NCBI GenBank assembly: GCA_016748015.1
Contig: JAAOMT010000426.1
Location: 29,620 to 93,619, forward strand
Direction of reading: 5' to 3'
DNA length: 64,000 nt
DNA from: Geosiphon pyriformis uo1
Taxonomy: Eukaryota; Fungi; Glomeromycota
Position 1 is the stretch's first letter, and each line of letters opens with the position of its first letter. The position numbers and the translations under genes were made by a program. The notes below the pieces were generated by a model, which was given only the letters and a program-made list of their open reading frames with translations, ran no database searches and had not been told where the DNA came from. Below, piece by piece: positions 2,828 to 29,199 of the stretch.

Positions 2828-5216
2828 ATGGCTGATATGCAACCATTTGCTAACACAGATATACCTGGATCATATCCGGAATCTTCTCACAGTGAGTATA
2901 GACATTCAAGTTTGAATTTAAGCCTTATAAGCCTCTTAATATTTTTTCCTCTAAACCATAAACCATTTATACTTGTAGACCCGCGACGAGTTTTAGATAG
3001 CACAAACAAGCAGAAGTTAGAACATCCAGGAGACACCCCAATCGCCACGGTTGCTCCTTTTGGTTGTTCAGCTTTGGGTGGTGTTGGTGTAAACCCTCTT
3101 GGCCGTGAGTACCATCTAAACCTTTTTTTTCAGACCCAATAGATTTGCTTCTGGTTAACCTGTTTTGACATTCATCTGTTAAAATTTGATCAGTGACTTT
3201 CAATGATTTGACAGACAATGTTTCATCATTGACAGGTTCAAATCCTCAAGACCAAGAGCATGAAGATTCGAATTTTTCGGAAAGACATACACATCACGAA
3301 CATGAACCAAGGAATCTCACACATGACGAAAACACAAGATCAAACGATGAATCTAACCAAAGCTCTTATATTGGCCAAACTTTGAAGGACTTGACAGGAA
3401 AGGTTTCATATTTGATAGGTTCAACTCCTCAAGACCAAAAGCATGAAGATTCGAATGTTTCGGAAAGAGATACGCATCACGAACATGAACCAAGGAATCT
3501 CACACATGACGAAAGCACAAGATCAAACGATGAATCTAACCAAAGTTCTTATATTGGCCAAACTTTGACGGGCTTGACAGGAAAGGTTTCATCATTGATA
3601 GGTTCAACCCCTCGAGATCAGACGCATGAAGATTCTAATGTTTCGGAAAGAGATACGCATCACGAACATGAACCAAGGAATCTCACACATGACGAAAGCA
3701 CAAGATCAAACGATGAATCTAACCAAAGCTCTTATATTGGCCAAACTTTGACGGGCTTGACAGGAAAGGTTTCATCATTGATAGGTTCAACCCCTCGAGA
3801 TCAGACGCATGAAAACTCGATTGCTTCTGAAAGTACCTATGACAATCATGAACCAATGAATCTTGGACATGATGAAAACACTAAATCAATTGATGAATCT
3901 AGCCTACCAACACAACACTTTCCTCGAGATCAAACACGTGAAAGCTCGATTGCTTCAGATAAGGAAATCTATCAAAATCATGGACCAATGAATCTTGGAT
4001 ATGGTGAAAGCACTAAATCAATTGATGAATCTAGCCTACCAACACAACACTTTCCTCAAGACCAAACGCGTGAAAACTCAATAGCTTCTGAAAAAGAGAC
4101 AATTCACAGTTATAAAACATTGGATCTCACAGATGATGAAGACACAAAGTCAATTAATGAACCTGATTTATCATTTCAACATACTCGCCAACATGATTCT
4201 AACGTTCCCACCGGTCCTACCCTACACACACACCAATTTGAATCTAATGTTCCCACCCTGCACACAGGACAATTTGAATCTAACGTTCCGACACAGCATA
4301 CTCACCAACTTGAATCTAACGTTCCCACCCTGCACACACACCAATTTGGATCTAACGTTCCAACACAGCATACTCACCAACTTGAATCCAATACGCCAAT
4401 CCAGCATGCTGATCAACCTCCAGATTATGGTACTGCAGCCTTGGCAGCACACCTTGACGCTATCAAAAAGGATTTAAAAGAACCAAGCAGTAATACACCA
4501 AGAAAACATCAAAATAATATAAATCATCAATCACCTGCAGGTTATGTAGCGCCGCATCATAGCTCGGAATACAGTACAAGAGAATTAGCTGATCGTGTTA
4601 AAGAAATCAACTTGGGTTCTGATGATTCTGAAAGTCCAATTGATCCATCTGATGCGCAGCGAAAGCTTCAACGGCCTATACCTCCCCCTCCTCTCCCTCC
4701 TCGTGATCATGATGATCATCAATTTGGTGATATCAACAATAATCCTAATCATCACCTTACCCATTTTGGTGCTGTATCGCATATAACTGATCGTCAATTA
4801 GATGAGATTAACAAGAGTCATAGGAAAGATAACACTCAAAAGAAGTCGGATGAAATTTTAGAAAATCCTTTGTCTACGGATAATATTAAAGATCACAATC
4901 GCCTCAATGACGGAATAAATCATGATACAATCAGGAAACATGATGATCAAATCGATAACCATGAAAATCTTGGTAATAATCATCCATCTAAAAGAGAGAA
5001 AATGGGCGCAGCTTTAGAAAAGACTGTTGGGACCGTTAAGGTAAAGAAAATTATTCGTTGTGCCCCATGATTATTATTTCCAAATATTAATGGTTTTAAA
5101 CATTTTAACAGGAGAAAATTGGAAAAATTGTGAAAAATGATGAATTAGTCGCCAAAGGTCTTGAGCAAAAAGAAAGCGCGGCGCTCAAACAAGATAACAG
5201 AAAATTGCATAAATGA
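2828..5216 (+). CDS. Repeat-rich hydrophilic protein with C-terminal CsbD/LEA-like motif; exons 2828-2891, 2979-3104, 3194-5040, 5112-5216
   Basis: GTGAGT/GTGAGT/GTAAAG donors and YAG acceptors join the ORFs in frame. Spliced C-terminus reads EKMGAALEKTVGTVKEKIGKIVKNDELVAKGLEQK (CsbD-like pattern). Body is His/Ser/Asp/Glu/Gln-rich with no hydrophobic segment. Confidence 0.8.
3208..3830 (+). repeat. Coding tandem repeat, 183-bp (61-aa) unit, about 3.3 copies
   Basis: Unit start ttgacag recurs at 3208, 3391, 3574 and 3757; copies 2 and 3 are nearly identical. Confidence 0.95.
4190..4400 (+). repeat. Coding tandem repeat, 36-bp (12-aa) unit ESNVPT[LQ]HTHQ[FL], about 5-6 copies
   Basis: Visible in the translation and as recurring tctaacgttcc. 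Confidence 0.9.
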
Positions 5217-24960: not shown

Positions 24961-25587
24961 GTTTTAAACTTTTATTGCTAATGATTTATTTAGTTTAAAA
25001 ATAATTTGTTTAATATAATATTATTTAACATCTAAGCTAAAAATTCAAATAAAATTAATTATTAAATCTTAAAAATTTAAAAAATTACTTATTAACAATT
25101 TTTTTTATTTAAAACAAAATACAGATGCATAAGAAAAAAGATAAAAATATGACCAAAACAGAAATCTTGTTAAAGACAGAACCTCTTTTTAACAACTAGG
25201 TAAAAATGTAGCAAATTGAATTTTTAAGTATATTACAAAAGATAAAGTATCTGTTTTACTCAGATAGTGACTCTTTTTATTTTAATAATAAATAAGCTAT
25301 AGTGATACCTCTTCTATATTTTGATTGTGTAAATGCACATGACGATTGTATAATAATGATCGAGTAGAAGTTTCGATTGTTTGTTAGATAATGAATATAG
25401 CATTAGATCTAAGTTTAGATTGTTTTGATTGGCTTGGTGGCTAATCACCTGTAAAAAGTGCACAGTTTACATTTACTGTGAAACAATGTGCATGAATACA
25501 GTTAGTCCCAAGATGCGATCATCAGTTGAACCAAATGATCCTGATGTAGGATAAAAATGAAACTATTGTCAAACGCGTCAAAAAAAA

Positions 25588-28346
25588 ATGTCATTAAAAC
25601 AACAGGAGCGAGATAATTTCGTGTTTTTCGATCAATCCGAAGAATGGAACCTCTTGAATTTTCTAAAGTACCTTGATTCAGAGAAGAGTTTGGGTGATAA
25701 CTCTGAAGTACACCACAAGTATAGAATAATTCTGAGTAGGATTAAAAACAGTGGAGATGTGTCGCAAGAAAAAAGAGAGAAGGCTGAACAAGCACTGTTA
25801 GCTTATGAAGAAAGTATTGCAATTTATTTTCTTTTTATTGCTCTTATATTTTGCCTAGAGAAGAGTGTTTGGTCGAGGCCGATAATCCCACCATCGAGGT
25901 GGTGGGCACACTCGGTGCTAGGTTGAGGCTGAAATACCCTTGTCGAGGCAGGGGGTGCACATCTAGGTGCTTAATATATGAGCTAGACAACCTTTGTAAC
26001 AGTAAGACTAACTAATTTCTCCTTAAGTATGAAAAGCGTTCTTCCCAGGTCAAAGAATTTTGGCGGAAAAGAAATCTTCGAATTTTACTTAACGAAAACA
26101 CTATGAAAAGCACCAAAAGGATTATCAACCAAATTAATATGGTACAGGATGAAGCAAGCGATGTTTTAGTTCTAGGTAAGAGGGATAATCTGAGGCAACT
26201 AAGATCAGGTATGTTTGAAATTGGTGATAAGATCGAAGGAGATGTTCGCCGCTTTGGACTGGAAAAGGTATATAAAAATCAAATAAACAGTGCATTGCTC
26301 AGAAATAATAATTAAGCTTATTATGCTTTAGAATGAACTTGAACAGCCATGTACACCAGAAGATAAGGTACTTTTATTTTTCTATCATGTTTTCAATGTA
26401 TAATTGTCTTCTTACTTTCAAATGTATACAGATTATACCCACTTCTTATGGTAATGAGTCCTCTACATCAGTAATTAATATACCTTCCAGGTCCATAGAA
26501 GATAAAAGCAAATCGGAAGAGGTAATATCTCTTCATTATTACATGTACAAAAAATATTAGTTAAAAATTTTAGAATTTTGTTTTTAGGAATCTGAATTCG
26601 ATGAATCTGAATCTGACGAATCGGATGTGATGTATGATATTGATAAAAAGGAGAGAAAGGTATGTTATAATGTTTCATGCTATTTTGTAAAAAAGAAAAT
26701 TTTTATAATGTTTTATGTAGTCAGGGCCATTCAAGCTGAGCGATGGGGACCGAACAGAGATTGAAAGTGTTTATGCGAAGCTGAAGAAGGATGTCATGTG
26801 GAGATTATCAAGCAGAAGATTTGTAGAAGAAGAGTTATATAGTCTTGGAAAGAAACTAGAATTTGAACAGTAAGTTTTACAGATACAATTAATCTTTACA
26901 TACATGATGGAAGATATATATTAATCTAATGTAAATGTATATTTTAGCACTGCACATTCTTTTATAATCGATACAGATGATGAAATTATTAAACAACATT
27001 TTACTGAACTTGAATTAGAAGAAATTGACAATGCATCTGTTCCGGAGGTTCCAGATCTCGCTCAGGACATTATTGAATATTTAAATAAGTTTATAAATAT
27101 AGTAAGTTGTAGATTGGATTGTTGATAAATAATGCCAATATGTATGGGATGCTAATTACATCAATTTTTTTCAATAGGATAGTGCAAAGAAAGTACGTTC
27201 TATTATTAGTGAGCAAGATGATAGATTCAATATAAACTATGATTCATCTATTCATCATGATCTGGATTACATTCGGTTTGCTCTTTATGCATTGTAAGTT
27301 TGTGCGTTTTTAATTTAAACATTAAGAAAGTTTGCCTACAATATGATGTTTATTTCACTCTCTTGCAAACGTTCCTTATGCAGAACCAGAGAGATTGAAA
27401 ATGGGGGTCTTGTACACCCAAATCTAGAATCATGGTATAATTGCCATATTTGGAATACAATTGTCGATCAAGGATTTGCAGACATCAAGGGAACGTTAGT
27501 CGTACGGTAATAAACTAATTTTTTTGATCTATTTTGCTCGGCAAATTACTACATGTTTTTTGGTTTCTTTCTGCTAAATTTCTAGAGGGGAAAGTACTTG
27601 CATTGCAACAGCCACCAGGAAAAACAGAAAGAGGGTAGTGACACAGAGGCGTAAAATGGGACGTCGAGGAGACTGGATATTAAGACTAACTGGTAATGGA
27701 GATCGTGACGAATACGGCATAGGTGAAGTTGGAAAATGCTGGTTAGATAGATTTGGAACGAAATTCTTGGGAGAAACATCTTTAAAGCAACCTAAAGCTT
27801 TAAAGGATATGTTAGTTAAACTCATGAAAAGAATCAATTGGGATAAAGAATTATGTTCAAAAGTGCAAACTGTTGGAATAACTCATTCAGGTATATAATT
27901 TTGCAGCATGATTTTTCTAAACATCGTACAACAAATTGTTACCCATTTCAGACTTTGTAGGTTTAATGATGACAGTCATGCATATGGACAACCCGCATGG
28001 ATATGTTTGTAGAATCCGTCGTGGAGAGTTCCTAGAGGTTCCAGATAAGGAAGAAAATCTATCGGCATTATTGGTTATACTGGCTGCCATATTGAATATC
28101 AAGGTTTCTATGTTCAACTGCTTTGTTTGCTTGATGACACGTAATGACTACCTTAACACATGTCATTTTTTACAGATTGCTGTACGAGAAACAATAAAAG
28201 TTGTACAACCGAAGATGCAAAGTGAAAGCATTTTCAAGCAAGCGGGGCGTCTAAAGCGACCACGAAATTCTGATGAAATTCCTGCATGCTTTACCACACC
28301 AAAAAAATTTAAGGAAATTACTTCTCGGAAAGTTGGGAAATATTAG
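25588..28346 (+). CDS. About 12-exon hypothetical protein with C-terminal PD-(D/E)xK restriction-endonuclease-like domain (Crinkler-type toxin/effector fold, inferred)
   Basis: Approximate exons: 25588-25809, 26028-26267, 26332-26367, 26432-26521, 26588-26659, 26721-26869, 26949-27101, 27178-27293, 27384-27507, 27586-27890, 27961-28103, 28177-28346. Motifs: MWRLSS..FVEEEL, HSFIID, NLESWYNCHIW, GESTCIATATRKN, RKMGRRGDWILR...DEYGIGEVGK, LKQPKALKDML, MDNPHGYVCRI. No stops noticed in the joined exons; the intron-1 donor is non-canonical. Confidence 0.75.
25840..25983 (+). ncRNA. Candidate structured intronic RNA element (long outer stem enclosing two three-way junctions, four YGAG-capped hairpins)
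   Basis: Pairings read directly: gctcttatatt/aatatatgagc, gcctaga/tctaggt, gagtgt/acactc, ttggt-cgag-gccga, cccaccat-cgag-gtggtggg, gtgc/gcac, ggt-tgag-gct, cccttgt-cgag-gcagggg. Confidence 0.6.
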
Positions 28347-29199
28347 ATAATGGTATCGACGATCGTAATTTTCATTAGTACTTACTGCTTTTTAACCCAA
28401 TCCGAGATATCATATTCAAAATATGAAAGCCAACTTAATCCATCATATAGTTCACATTCATTTACAAACAACATCACCCGTGGAATCTAGTTTCAACAGA
28501 GGCCTCTACTTCAAAGATACGGATAATAAAGGTGAAATTTAAAAGATGAAAGCGTACAAAGTACTATTAAGCCTTCATCGCTTAAACGAGGGGCTAAAAA
28601 TCTGAAGGCTGCTGAAAAAATCTCGCCTTATTTTGTAATTGTGAAAGCACCCCCTTCCGAACCTCAATCAATTCTCATTATTAATATTAATAATTGCAAA
28701 AGAATTCGTCTTGCCAAATCATCATCCAAAAATCAAAGAGATGCAAGAACTTGTACCAGAATTTCGCCATATTTTTCCTTAAAAAAAAGACTATCTACAT
28801 TTAACAATGACTCAACCCCAAAATCAAAGTGAGGTATACCAAAAAGACGGGGCAGTTGCAAGCACACATTTTAAAGAAATAGAAAAATCCGGTGCAAAGT
28901 CCCAGGAAAGTAATTTTGAGAAAAAACAAGATTCAAAAGAGTAATAAATTGCGATTGAGATATTGTCCATATCAAAAAAGGATTAGAACAATCTTCTACA
29001 AAAATTAAATTCATTTTACGTTGAAGATTAAATCATCTAACTTATAAGCAAAAATTTAATGGAGTTTTTAGATTAGAAAATAATTTACCTGTTATTTGGC
29101 ATTAATGCTACAAAAAAATGCAAATAATACTTTTAATAATAATTGGTCCGGAATGTATTTGCCACCAGCACACAATTATTTCAATATGAACAAGATATA

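Follow-up and report, generated by a model that had tools for sequence, protein, structure and literature searches.

Fungal thiamine pyrophosphate (TPP) riboswitch introns, for example those of Neurospora NMT1 and THI4 (RF00059), contain a structured RNA in the first intron or leader that hides or exposes alternative 5' splice sites, and their default transcript carries a short upstream open reading frame (ORF) and is unproductive. In the yeast RPL30, RPS14B, RPL22B and RPS9 pre-mRNAs, conserved hairpins over splice sites are bound by the gene's own product, whereby splicing is blocked and the intron is retained. The bacterial glycine tandem and guanidine-II (mini-ykkC) riboswitches consist of repeated small units with identical conserved tetraloops (ACGR) that act together. 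To our knowledge, very few conserved regulatory RNA structures have been found in fungal nuclear pre-mRNAs outside the yeasts, and a literature search returned no element of the kind treated here in these fungi and no conserved regulatory RNA structure for arbuscular mycorrhizal fungi. We analysed a stretch of 64,000 nucleotides (nt) from Geosiphon pyriformis uo1 (contig JAAOMT010000426.1, positions 29,620 to 93,619; hereafter the window), in which a guanine-cytosine (GC)-rich element lies between the first two coding exons, E1 and E2, of a gene. We propose, with a probability of roughly 0.5, that this element represents an undescribed cis-acting RNA structure gating E1-E2 splicing in the N-terminal cassette of a small gene family.

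Related fungal structures have been surveyed (PMC8216456), and zipper stems are known from long yeast introns according to a further report (PMC12350175). In function, the element would most resemble the TPP riboswitch introns and the autoregulatory hairpins of yeast ribosomal-protein genes; we place it in neither class because the Rfam scan was negative, its design is different and no ligand or protein is known for it. Like the TPP riboswitches it is a conserved structured RNA in the 5' region of a gene with, as proposed here, masked splice sites, but no Rfam riboswitch was matched at E up to 10, a ligand pocket is not evident, and it consists of two duplicated modules with four identical small loops in a lineage-specific host gene. 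With the ribosomal-protein stem-loops it shares hairpins overlapping splice sites and retained transcripts, whereas it differs in its four repeated loops in two modules, its restriction to Glomeraceae and a host that is not a ribosomal protein. The pairing of its outer stem between the ends of an over-long intron is reminiscent of the Saccharomyces zipper stems; in those, neither the loop sequence nor the internal design is conserved, while the element has conserved loops and linkers and is retained. Repeated small units with the same tetraloops also recall the tandem and mini-ykkC riboswitches, a resemblance that we mention as a lead only: these are bacterial, have ACGR loops and no splicing context, and the Rfam scan was negative for the element. 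Introner-like elements and miniature inverted-repeat transposable elements (MITEs) are likewise structured, compositionally odd segments in intron-like intervals, but they are multi-copy and dispersed, whereas the element occurs at one locus and one decayed paralog and was inherited vertically with its cassette.

Position and conservation of the element

The GC-rich island (55% GC) spans 25853-25968 and holds an outer stem and two tandem modules of about 50 nt, which are diverged duplicates of each other. In a GC profile the content was 0.55 at 25850-25949 and about 0.3 in the flanks, in agreement with an earlier sequence-only reading of the window, which had described such an island in AT-rich surroundings and whose letters and hairpin positions we could reproduce. 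Its further claim that CpG dinucleotides survive specially in the element was contradicted by an observed/expected ratio of 0.64, against 0.83 for the window.

Homologs were searched exon by exon. With exon 2 we recovered 13 representative proteins, several of them with an E1-like N-terminus, and two further searches added named Rhizophagus irregularis and Funneliformis proteins. Ten homologous copies of the element were found, nine in Rhizophagus/Funneliformis-type assemblies and one at a second locus of the Geosiphon genome, and all of them lay between the same two coding exons. Nine loci (L040, L041, L042, L043, L044, L045, L046, L049 and L054) carried it between E1-like and E2-like exons, the former with 59-71% identity. 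Trees of the element and of exon 2 separated lineage A (L040, L045, L049, L042, L041), lineage B (L043, L044, L054), lineage C (L046) and the window. Two lineage A copies, labelled Acaulospora morrowiae (L042) and Funneliformis mosseae (L041), were near-identical to Rhizophagus sequence and were therefore not counted as independent.

Mean pairwise identity reached 0.79 in module 1 and 0.77 in module 2, compared with 0.79-0.81 in the coding flanks and 0.61-0.62 in the spacer and downstream intron. Module 1 of the window was 0.87-0.91 identical to lineages A and C, and all helices of the window were intact. Variable columns were distributed over the three codon positions as 4/1/1 of 39 in module 1 and as 14/13/25 of 180 in E2, which means that 1 of 13 third positions varied in module 1 versus 25 of 60 in exon 2. 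The word GTYGAGGCYGA stood in a different reading frame in lineage B (QLRLK versus LVEAD), and module 2 differed from its homologs by indels of 1-3 nt and is thus not coding. With few third-position changes, 1-nt and 2-3-nt indels and a frame switch within it, the element did not show the pattern of a protein-coding sequence. Judging from these alignments, it is under purifying selection at the nucleotide level and conserved within Glomeraceae.

Several copies showed peculiarities of their own. L041 and L042 were almost identical to Rhizophagus irregularis/clarus-type sequence, introns included, which suggests cross-contamination or mislabelling of the two entries. An excess of G>A and C>T differences was seen in L040, L041 and L043. 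In the R. irregularis paralog P0001 (L047/L048:3043-3120; LLXH/LLXK assemblies) the whole element and most of E1 were lost, leaving a gap of about 50 nt between E1 start and E2.

Covariation and folding of the stems

In the unfitted MAFFT alignment 80.7% of cells at paired positions could pair, against 34-53% when the partners were slid, and after covariance-model realignment the share was 84.7-85.9%. The model-fitted alignments contained 6 double-change pairs among nine sequences (reached in 4 of 500 shuffles) and 12 among eleven sequences (0 of 500), three of the 12 stemming from a doubtful fit of the decayed copy. At the level of the module family the unfitted MAFFT alignment contained 8 such pairs (1 of 500), with a covariation score of 0.272 versus 0.179±0.018. 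We also used a tree-aware null, in which each site, at a rate of its own, evolved from the consensus over the maximum-likelihood tree without regard to the others. Under this null the observed pairing of 85.6% stood against 73.9±3.3% (0 of 400), and the 6 observed double-change pairs against 1.7±1.1 (1 of 400), a comparison limited in power by the approximately five lineages.

Helices 1-3 were paired at 87-93% across the homologs. A single pair of long hairpin 1 occurred as C-G, U-G and U-A, and in long hairpin 2 changes were found on both sides in 5 of 7 pairs. Even the close relatives L044 and L054 were two full compensatory pairs apart. An equivalent of the outer stem existed in every lineage, with a compensatory A-U to G-C exchange in L046. 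Of the longer outer stem proposed in the sequence-only reading, the inner part (25853-25859 with 25962-25968) stood, a duplex of -10.2 kcal/mol (z -2.3) that was present in all lineages. These patterns argue with moderate strength that the stems have been kept by compensatory substitutions, and the earlier idea of a selected structured RNA is supported by its recurrence at one position in some five gene lineages and by compensatory changes beyond the tree-aware null. An apparent covariation of kissing loops (UUGA with UCAA in L041 and L043) was dropped; the variants are products of CpG decay in copies with many further G>A/C>T changes.

RNAfold of 25861-25962 returned the expected two-module design as the minimum free energy (MFE) structure at -35.7 kcal/mol, compared with -25.6 kcal/mol for the minus strand. 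In all copies the plus strand was more stable by 3-12 kcal/mol, except in L046, where the difference was marginal (0.4), and G-U pairs made up about 17% of paired cells across the copies. The structure is therefore taken to be one of RNA and of the sense strand, as had been anticipated. Longer sequence contexts gave different folds. The word CCUAG at the end of the spacer (25854-25858) was complementary to CUAGG at the start of module 2 (25919-25923) in all nine sequences (columns 86-90 with 159-163 of alignment A3); the sole changes were C>U, by which a wobble pair is kept. This pairing, which is incompatible with short hairpin 2, could be an alternative conformation.

Loop sequences

In lineages A and C all four loops read U-CGAG-U; those of the window, of lineage B and of the decayed copy read U-YGAG-G. 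Fixed differences between lineages A and C on one side and the window and lineage B on the other were found in 6 of 105 alignment columns. Four of these six columns were the base directly 3' of each GAG, always exchanged between G and T (P about 3e-6 under random placement). This concerted change in four equivalent loops fits the multivalent binding site postulated before, and it is the strongest hint that the four loops may be read as equivalents by one partner. CGAG and UGAG presumably conform to the YNMG type of tetraloop. Hairpins of at least 5 base pairs (bp) with a YGAG loop occurred three times within 80 nt here and three times on the remaining 64-kb plus strand, and 4 of the 20 TYGAGG words of the window fell within one 70-nt stretch of the element. 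The four YGAG hairpins in two modules were thus found as described, with the reservation that short hairpin 2 is weaker than claimed.

Transcripts and splice sites

Transcript evidence came from contigs of two RNA data sets, runs X2 and X3, which were read as complementary DNA (cDNA) because of 11 clean GT..AG joints across the gene. The resulting gene model has 12 exons and introns of 61-90 nt, which bears out the earlier remark that the other introns of this gene are short. The X2 contig was colinear with the window from 25565 to 25966 and then skipped 25967-26027 (61 nt; joint 25964>26026, cut +2), whereas the X3 contig kept this stretch too. In both data sets the other 10 introns were removed and the element, transcribed on the sense strand, was kept, so that it is exonic or part of a retained intron in the sampled RNA. 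A spliced intron 1 of 218 nt, as assumed in the sequence-only reading, is at odds with the retention of 25814-25966 in both contigs; contigs of this kind are unable to show minor isoforms or the ends of small RNAs.

The borders of an intron were conserved nevertheless. A GT directly after E1 (columns 35-36 of alignment A3, conserved in all homologs) and an AG before E2 were present in 9 of 9 aligned loci, and removal of the whole E1-E2 interval was in frame in lineage B (P0005, P0022, P0023: ...YEST|NES...). The intron context postulated earlier thus holds for the GT..AG borders and, by homology, for lineage B but not for the Geosiphon contigs. In the window and lineage A removal of the whole interval is one base out of frame. 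There, an in-frame E1-E2 message would arise only if a 47-nt intron (25814-25860) is spliced out, a 41-nt micro-exon (25861-25901) is included and the GT at 25902 serves as donor. Removing the 47-nt candidate intron A would bring E1 into frame with module 1, and the splice from 25902 to 26028 was in frame in 9 of 9 aligned homologs (tblastn frames) and unused in the RNA contigs. Part of module 1 may serve as a 41-nt micro-exon in the window lineage. The sampled RNA used neither the acceptor at the end of the spacer nor the GT at 25902, only the donor GT at 25967 or nothing, and this donor was species-specific, being absent at the homologous place in every other locus. Across the loci the E1-E2 interval measured 215-245 nt, about three times the usual intron. 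Public gene models treated the region in at least five ways (P0003, P0004/P0019, P0005/P0022, P0006, P0007, P0017) and are unreliable at this locus.

The ORF starting at ATG 25588 enters the element and ends at TGA 25924-25926, within the UGAG loop of short hairpin 2, so the retained isoform cannot give an E1-E2 fusion protein. Stops at 25883, 25919 and 25964 interrupt the frame leading on to exon 2, and the downstream ORF has its first in-frame ATG at 26103. Programmed frameshifting or bypassing from E1 to E2 on the retained mRNA was rejected as impossible given these three stops and the E1-frame stop at 25924. E1, E2 and the ten downstream exons were all still open. The X2 contig had 7 instead of 6 A at 25768-25774, which ends the E1 frame about 46 codons earlier; the extra A may be a strain difference or a homopolymer error.

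Copy number and comparison with known families

In the 128-Mb genome the element was confined to this locus and one decayed paralogous copy by BLAST, module pattern and covariance models. BLAST with the element returned one copy, the module pattern matched only the two modules with no reverse and no control hits, and models R1 and R2 found this locus and C776:336525-336640. At the latter (L051:1362-1620) an E1-like fragment with an in-frame stop precedes the two modules; 18 nt have been inserted between these, and the last loop has lost 1 nt. In this copy long hairpin 1 kept 7 of 8 pairs, three pairs being changed. The element was absent only in L047/L048, where the deletion also took most of E1.

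A cmscan of 25500-26300 against Rfam 15 at E up to 10 gave no family match, riboswitches, hammerhead and small nucleolar RNAs (snoRNAs) included, which accords with the previous statement that no named RNA family was recognised. The best overlapping scores were 11.6-21.9 bits (snoR118 20.5, sR53 11.6, KRAS_3UTR 21.9) against thresholds of 44-49, and are AT-rich or chance matches. ARAGORN predicted no transfer RNA at the element. An H/ACA snoRNA was rejected by eye, the candidate boxes not being conserved (ACA in the window, ACC in others). A U12-type intron was likewise dismissed: TCCTTAAG at the window acceptor resembles a U12 branch site, but the 5' site is not of ATCC type and the motif is absent in homologs. 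A Mer1-type enhancer, AUACCCUU at 25934, was not conserved in homologs.

A MITE or foldback origin, which had been named as a refutation of the cis-acting RNA, was checked and rejected: there were no dispersed copies beyond the single locus and its decayed paralog, 9 of 9 intact homologs shared the E1-E2 position, and no target-site duplication flanking the element was seen by eye. A bacterial or endosymbiont origin was rejected as well. Among 185,579 prokaryote genomes the 20-mer of long hairpin 1 had 18 single hits, which were scattered over unrelated taxa and no more numerous than chance could yield; a degenerate pattern of the element core had 0 hits in the metagenomes.

Proposed splicing gate and alternative explanations

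In the mechanism that we propose, an outer stem would close two tandemly duplicated three-way-junction modules, each with its own closing stem and with a short and a long hairpin joined by an A-rich linker, and the folded element would mask every site needed for in-frame joining of E1 to E2. The acceptor after the spacer would be buried in the outer and closing stems, and long hairpin 1 would enclose the conserved GT 25902 in its 3' arm. Folding of the element, perhaps together with binding, might hide the productive splice sites and leave a transcript that is unproductive for the E1-E2 protein. A factor reading the four equivalent loops, or a change in folding, might then choose between the unproductive and a productive form, the latter being micro-exon inclusion in the window lineage or removal of the whole intron where this is in frame. 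We infer such a structure-dependent gate because the sampled RNA ignores conserved productive sites; that E1, E2 and every later exon have stayed open speaks for the existence of a productive form.

Several points weigh against this reading. Two of the alignments used for covariation were fitted to the model, and only about five independent lineages were sampled, several copies coming from single-nucleus assemblies rich in G>A/C>T changes. Folding energies were barely lower than those of shuffled sequences (z -0.8 to -2.4; with dinucleotide shuffling -2.4 for module 1 alone, -1.15 for the core and -0.1 to -1.6 for homologs), and with z values of -0.1 to -2 in most copies the thermodynamic support is weak. 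Short hairpin 2 has only 3 bp, two of them G-U. RNAalifold favoured partly different long-range pairings, with the short hairpins swapping arms or CCUAG pairing with CUAGG, and we take no more than the pair of long hairpins and the overall closed layout of two modules to be robust. For runs X2 and X3 the labels read 'DNA?' or 'probably DNA', and no isoform joining E1 to E2 was present among their contigs, to which minor isoforms are invisible. Parts of the family may also be decaying, since R. irregularis DAOM197198 of lineage A has an in-frame stop in E2 (L045:2911-3093), where the annotation splits the gene in two, and L042:848-1038 has a frameshift in E1; some family members may thus be pseudogenes.

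Other explanations account for part of these observations. The element could act as a passive zipper that compacts a long intron and brings the 5' splice site to the branch point with no regulatory partner. The interval of three times the usual 61-90 nt and an outer stem joining its ends in all lineages would suit this, but loop sequences, linkers and the two-module design are conserved beyond pairing, the four loops changed in concert, the observed transcripts retain the region instead of splicing it efficiently, and the intron owes its length solely to the element itself; we consider a mere zipper unlikely. A conserved coding sequence, a micro-exon or part of exon 1 reading ...ECLVEADNPTIEV... 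with incidental palindromes, appears improbable. Frame 0 of module 1 resembles CLVESDNPAIEL in the predicted proteins P0004, P0007, P0017 and P0019, and the micro-exon (25861-25901) with its conserved GT 25902 restores the E1-E2 frame in the window lineage. Third positions are nevertheless the most conserved ones, the short-hairpin word changes frame in lineage B, and module 2 is equally conserved yet broken by 1-3-nt indels and stops; moreover, the stems covary, the lineage B gene models P0005, P0022 and P0023 skip the element entirely, and the micro-exon sites are left unused in the RNA contigs. In part, lineage B already shows module 1 to be equally conserved where coding is impossible.

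A separate small non-coding RNA that is cut from the host transcript, either like a snoRNA or as a stable intronic RNA, would explain the compact, GC-rich hairpin-hinge-hairpin look with two domains and a conservation above that of the host intron. We consider it decidedly improbable, as the element matched no Rfam family even at E up to 10, its candidate H and ACA boxes lacked conservation on inspection by eye, and it was found solely inside the gene cassette and was lost together with E1 in paralog L047; the ends of a small RNA would not be revealed by contigs. A feature of the DNA itself (an inserted MITE or foldback element, a fragment captured from bacteria or a cluster of protein-binding palindromes) might be suspected from a GC-rich island with inverted repeats in AT-rich DNA and from the TCGA cores, which are DNA palindromes. 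This is highly improbable and already largely refuted by the single locus in the 128-Mb genome, the orthologous or paralogous position in all homologs, the approximately 17% of G-U pairs, which would be mismatches in DNA, the chance-level prokaryote hits and the empty metagenome scan. The element could finally be a relic in Geosiphon, where the 5' part of the gene would be decaying with a cryptic donor at 25967, E1 unjoined and the element without present function. The species-specific, out-of-frame donor in use, the extra A at 25768 in X2 that truncates E1 and the stops or frameshifts in other copies point in this direction, but E1, E2 and ten downstream exons are open, and module 1 has kept its high identity to lineages A and C and the element all its helices, so that we regard a relic as distinctly unlikely.

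Beyond the splicing gate as such, one might speculate that the element is a eukaryotic RNA switch of a new kind, in which one trans-acting partner reads the four U-YGAG-G/U loops jointly; this partner could be the product of the element's own gene, and its binding would decide on the use of the masked sites and on full-length protein. We offer this extension as doubtful. If it were true, the concerted G-to-U change of the loops between lineages A and B, whose paralogs share the R. irregularis genome, would amount to a switch in specificity that insulates paralog-specific feedback loops.

Features, host gene and surroundings

Table 1. Coordinates of the element and its neighbouring exons in the window
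Feature	Position	Strand	Remarks
E1, coding part of exon 1	25588..25813	+	ORF of 75 codons plus 1 base; ends at a GT kept in all homologs
AT-rich spacer with GT..AG borders	25814..25860	+	candidate 47-nt intron A; RNA contigs colinear here
Outer stem, 5' arm (GCCUAGA)	25853..25859	+	overlaps candidate acceptor of intron A
Module 1	25863..25913	+	MFE fold; closing stem 25863-25868/25908-25913
Module 1, short hairpin	25869-25882		loop CGAG; followed by linker UAAU
Module 1, long hairpin	25887-25906		loop CGAG
GT within 3' arm of long hairpin 1	25902..25903	+	kept in 9/9 aligned intact homologs
Module 2	25914..25961	+	MFE fold; closing stem 25915-25918/25957-25960
Module 2, short hairpin	25921-25930		weak; loop UGAG; followed by linker
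Module 2, long hairpin	25937-25954		loop CGAG
Outer stem, 3' arm (UCUAGGU)	25962..25968	+	holds donor GT 25967-25968, the one used
GT..AG intron of 61 nt	25967..26027	+	removed in run X2 contig, kept in run X3 contig
Exon 2 (E2)	26028..26267	+	80 codons; conserved at protein level; first in-frame ATG 26103

For the host gene, Pfam returned nothing with the window exons, and paralog P0022 had a weak HSDR_N match (E 0.014) below the cutoff. A sequence search of the PDB gave no match for the host protein, the Atlas search led to unnamed Mucoromycota clusters only, and exon 2 had no match among length-matched proteins. Inspection by eye brings out a D...E-x(1,2)-K pattern, and in view of the missing Pfam, PDB and Atlas names the putative label 'nuclease' rests on this pattern. 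The paralogs L020 and L021 of the same genome had only later exons or a weak E1 match in common with the gene. The C-terminal domains to which the E1-element-E2 cassette is attached are very different from lineage to lineage (26721-28348 versus L054 and P0022). The exon-10 domain of the window has at least 21 paralogous matches in the genome, while the cassette occurs in two loci only.

Just upstream of the gene, at 25333-25487, many run X1 DNA contigs matched with 90-95% identity at a 5-15-fold higher depth and continued into unlike sequence, which indicates that this stretch belongs to a dispersed repeat family beside the promoter region. Elsewhere in the window, at 3244-3930, the word CCTYRA recurred at 183-nt spacing (3244, 3427, 3610 and 3793), and identical 6-bp hairpins with a CTCGAG loop were present on the minus strand at 3614 and 3797; this region looks like a tandem repeat array.

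Significance

The element lends itself to study as a candidate for splicing under structural control in a fungal lineage that diverged early. Its merits as a candidate are the conserved position across paralogs and genera, the compensatory changes in its stems, the four co-varied loops and the overlap of the predicted structure with every productive splice site.

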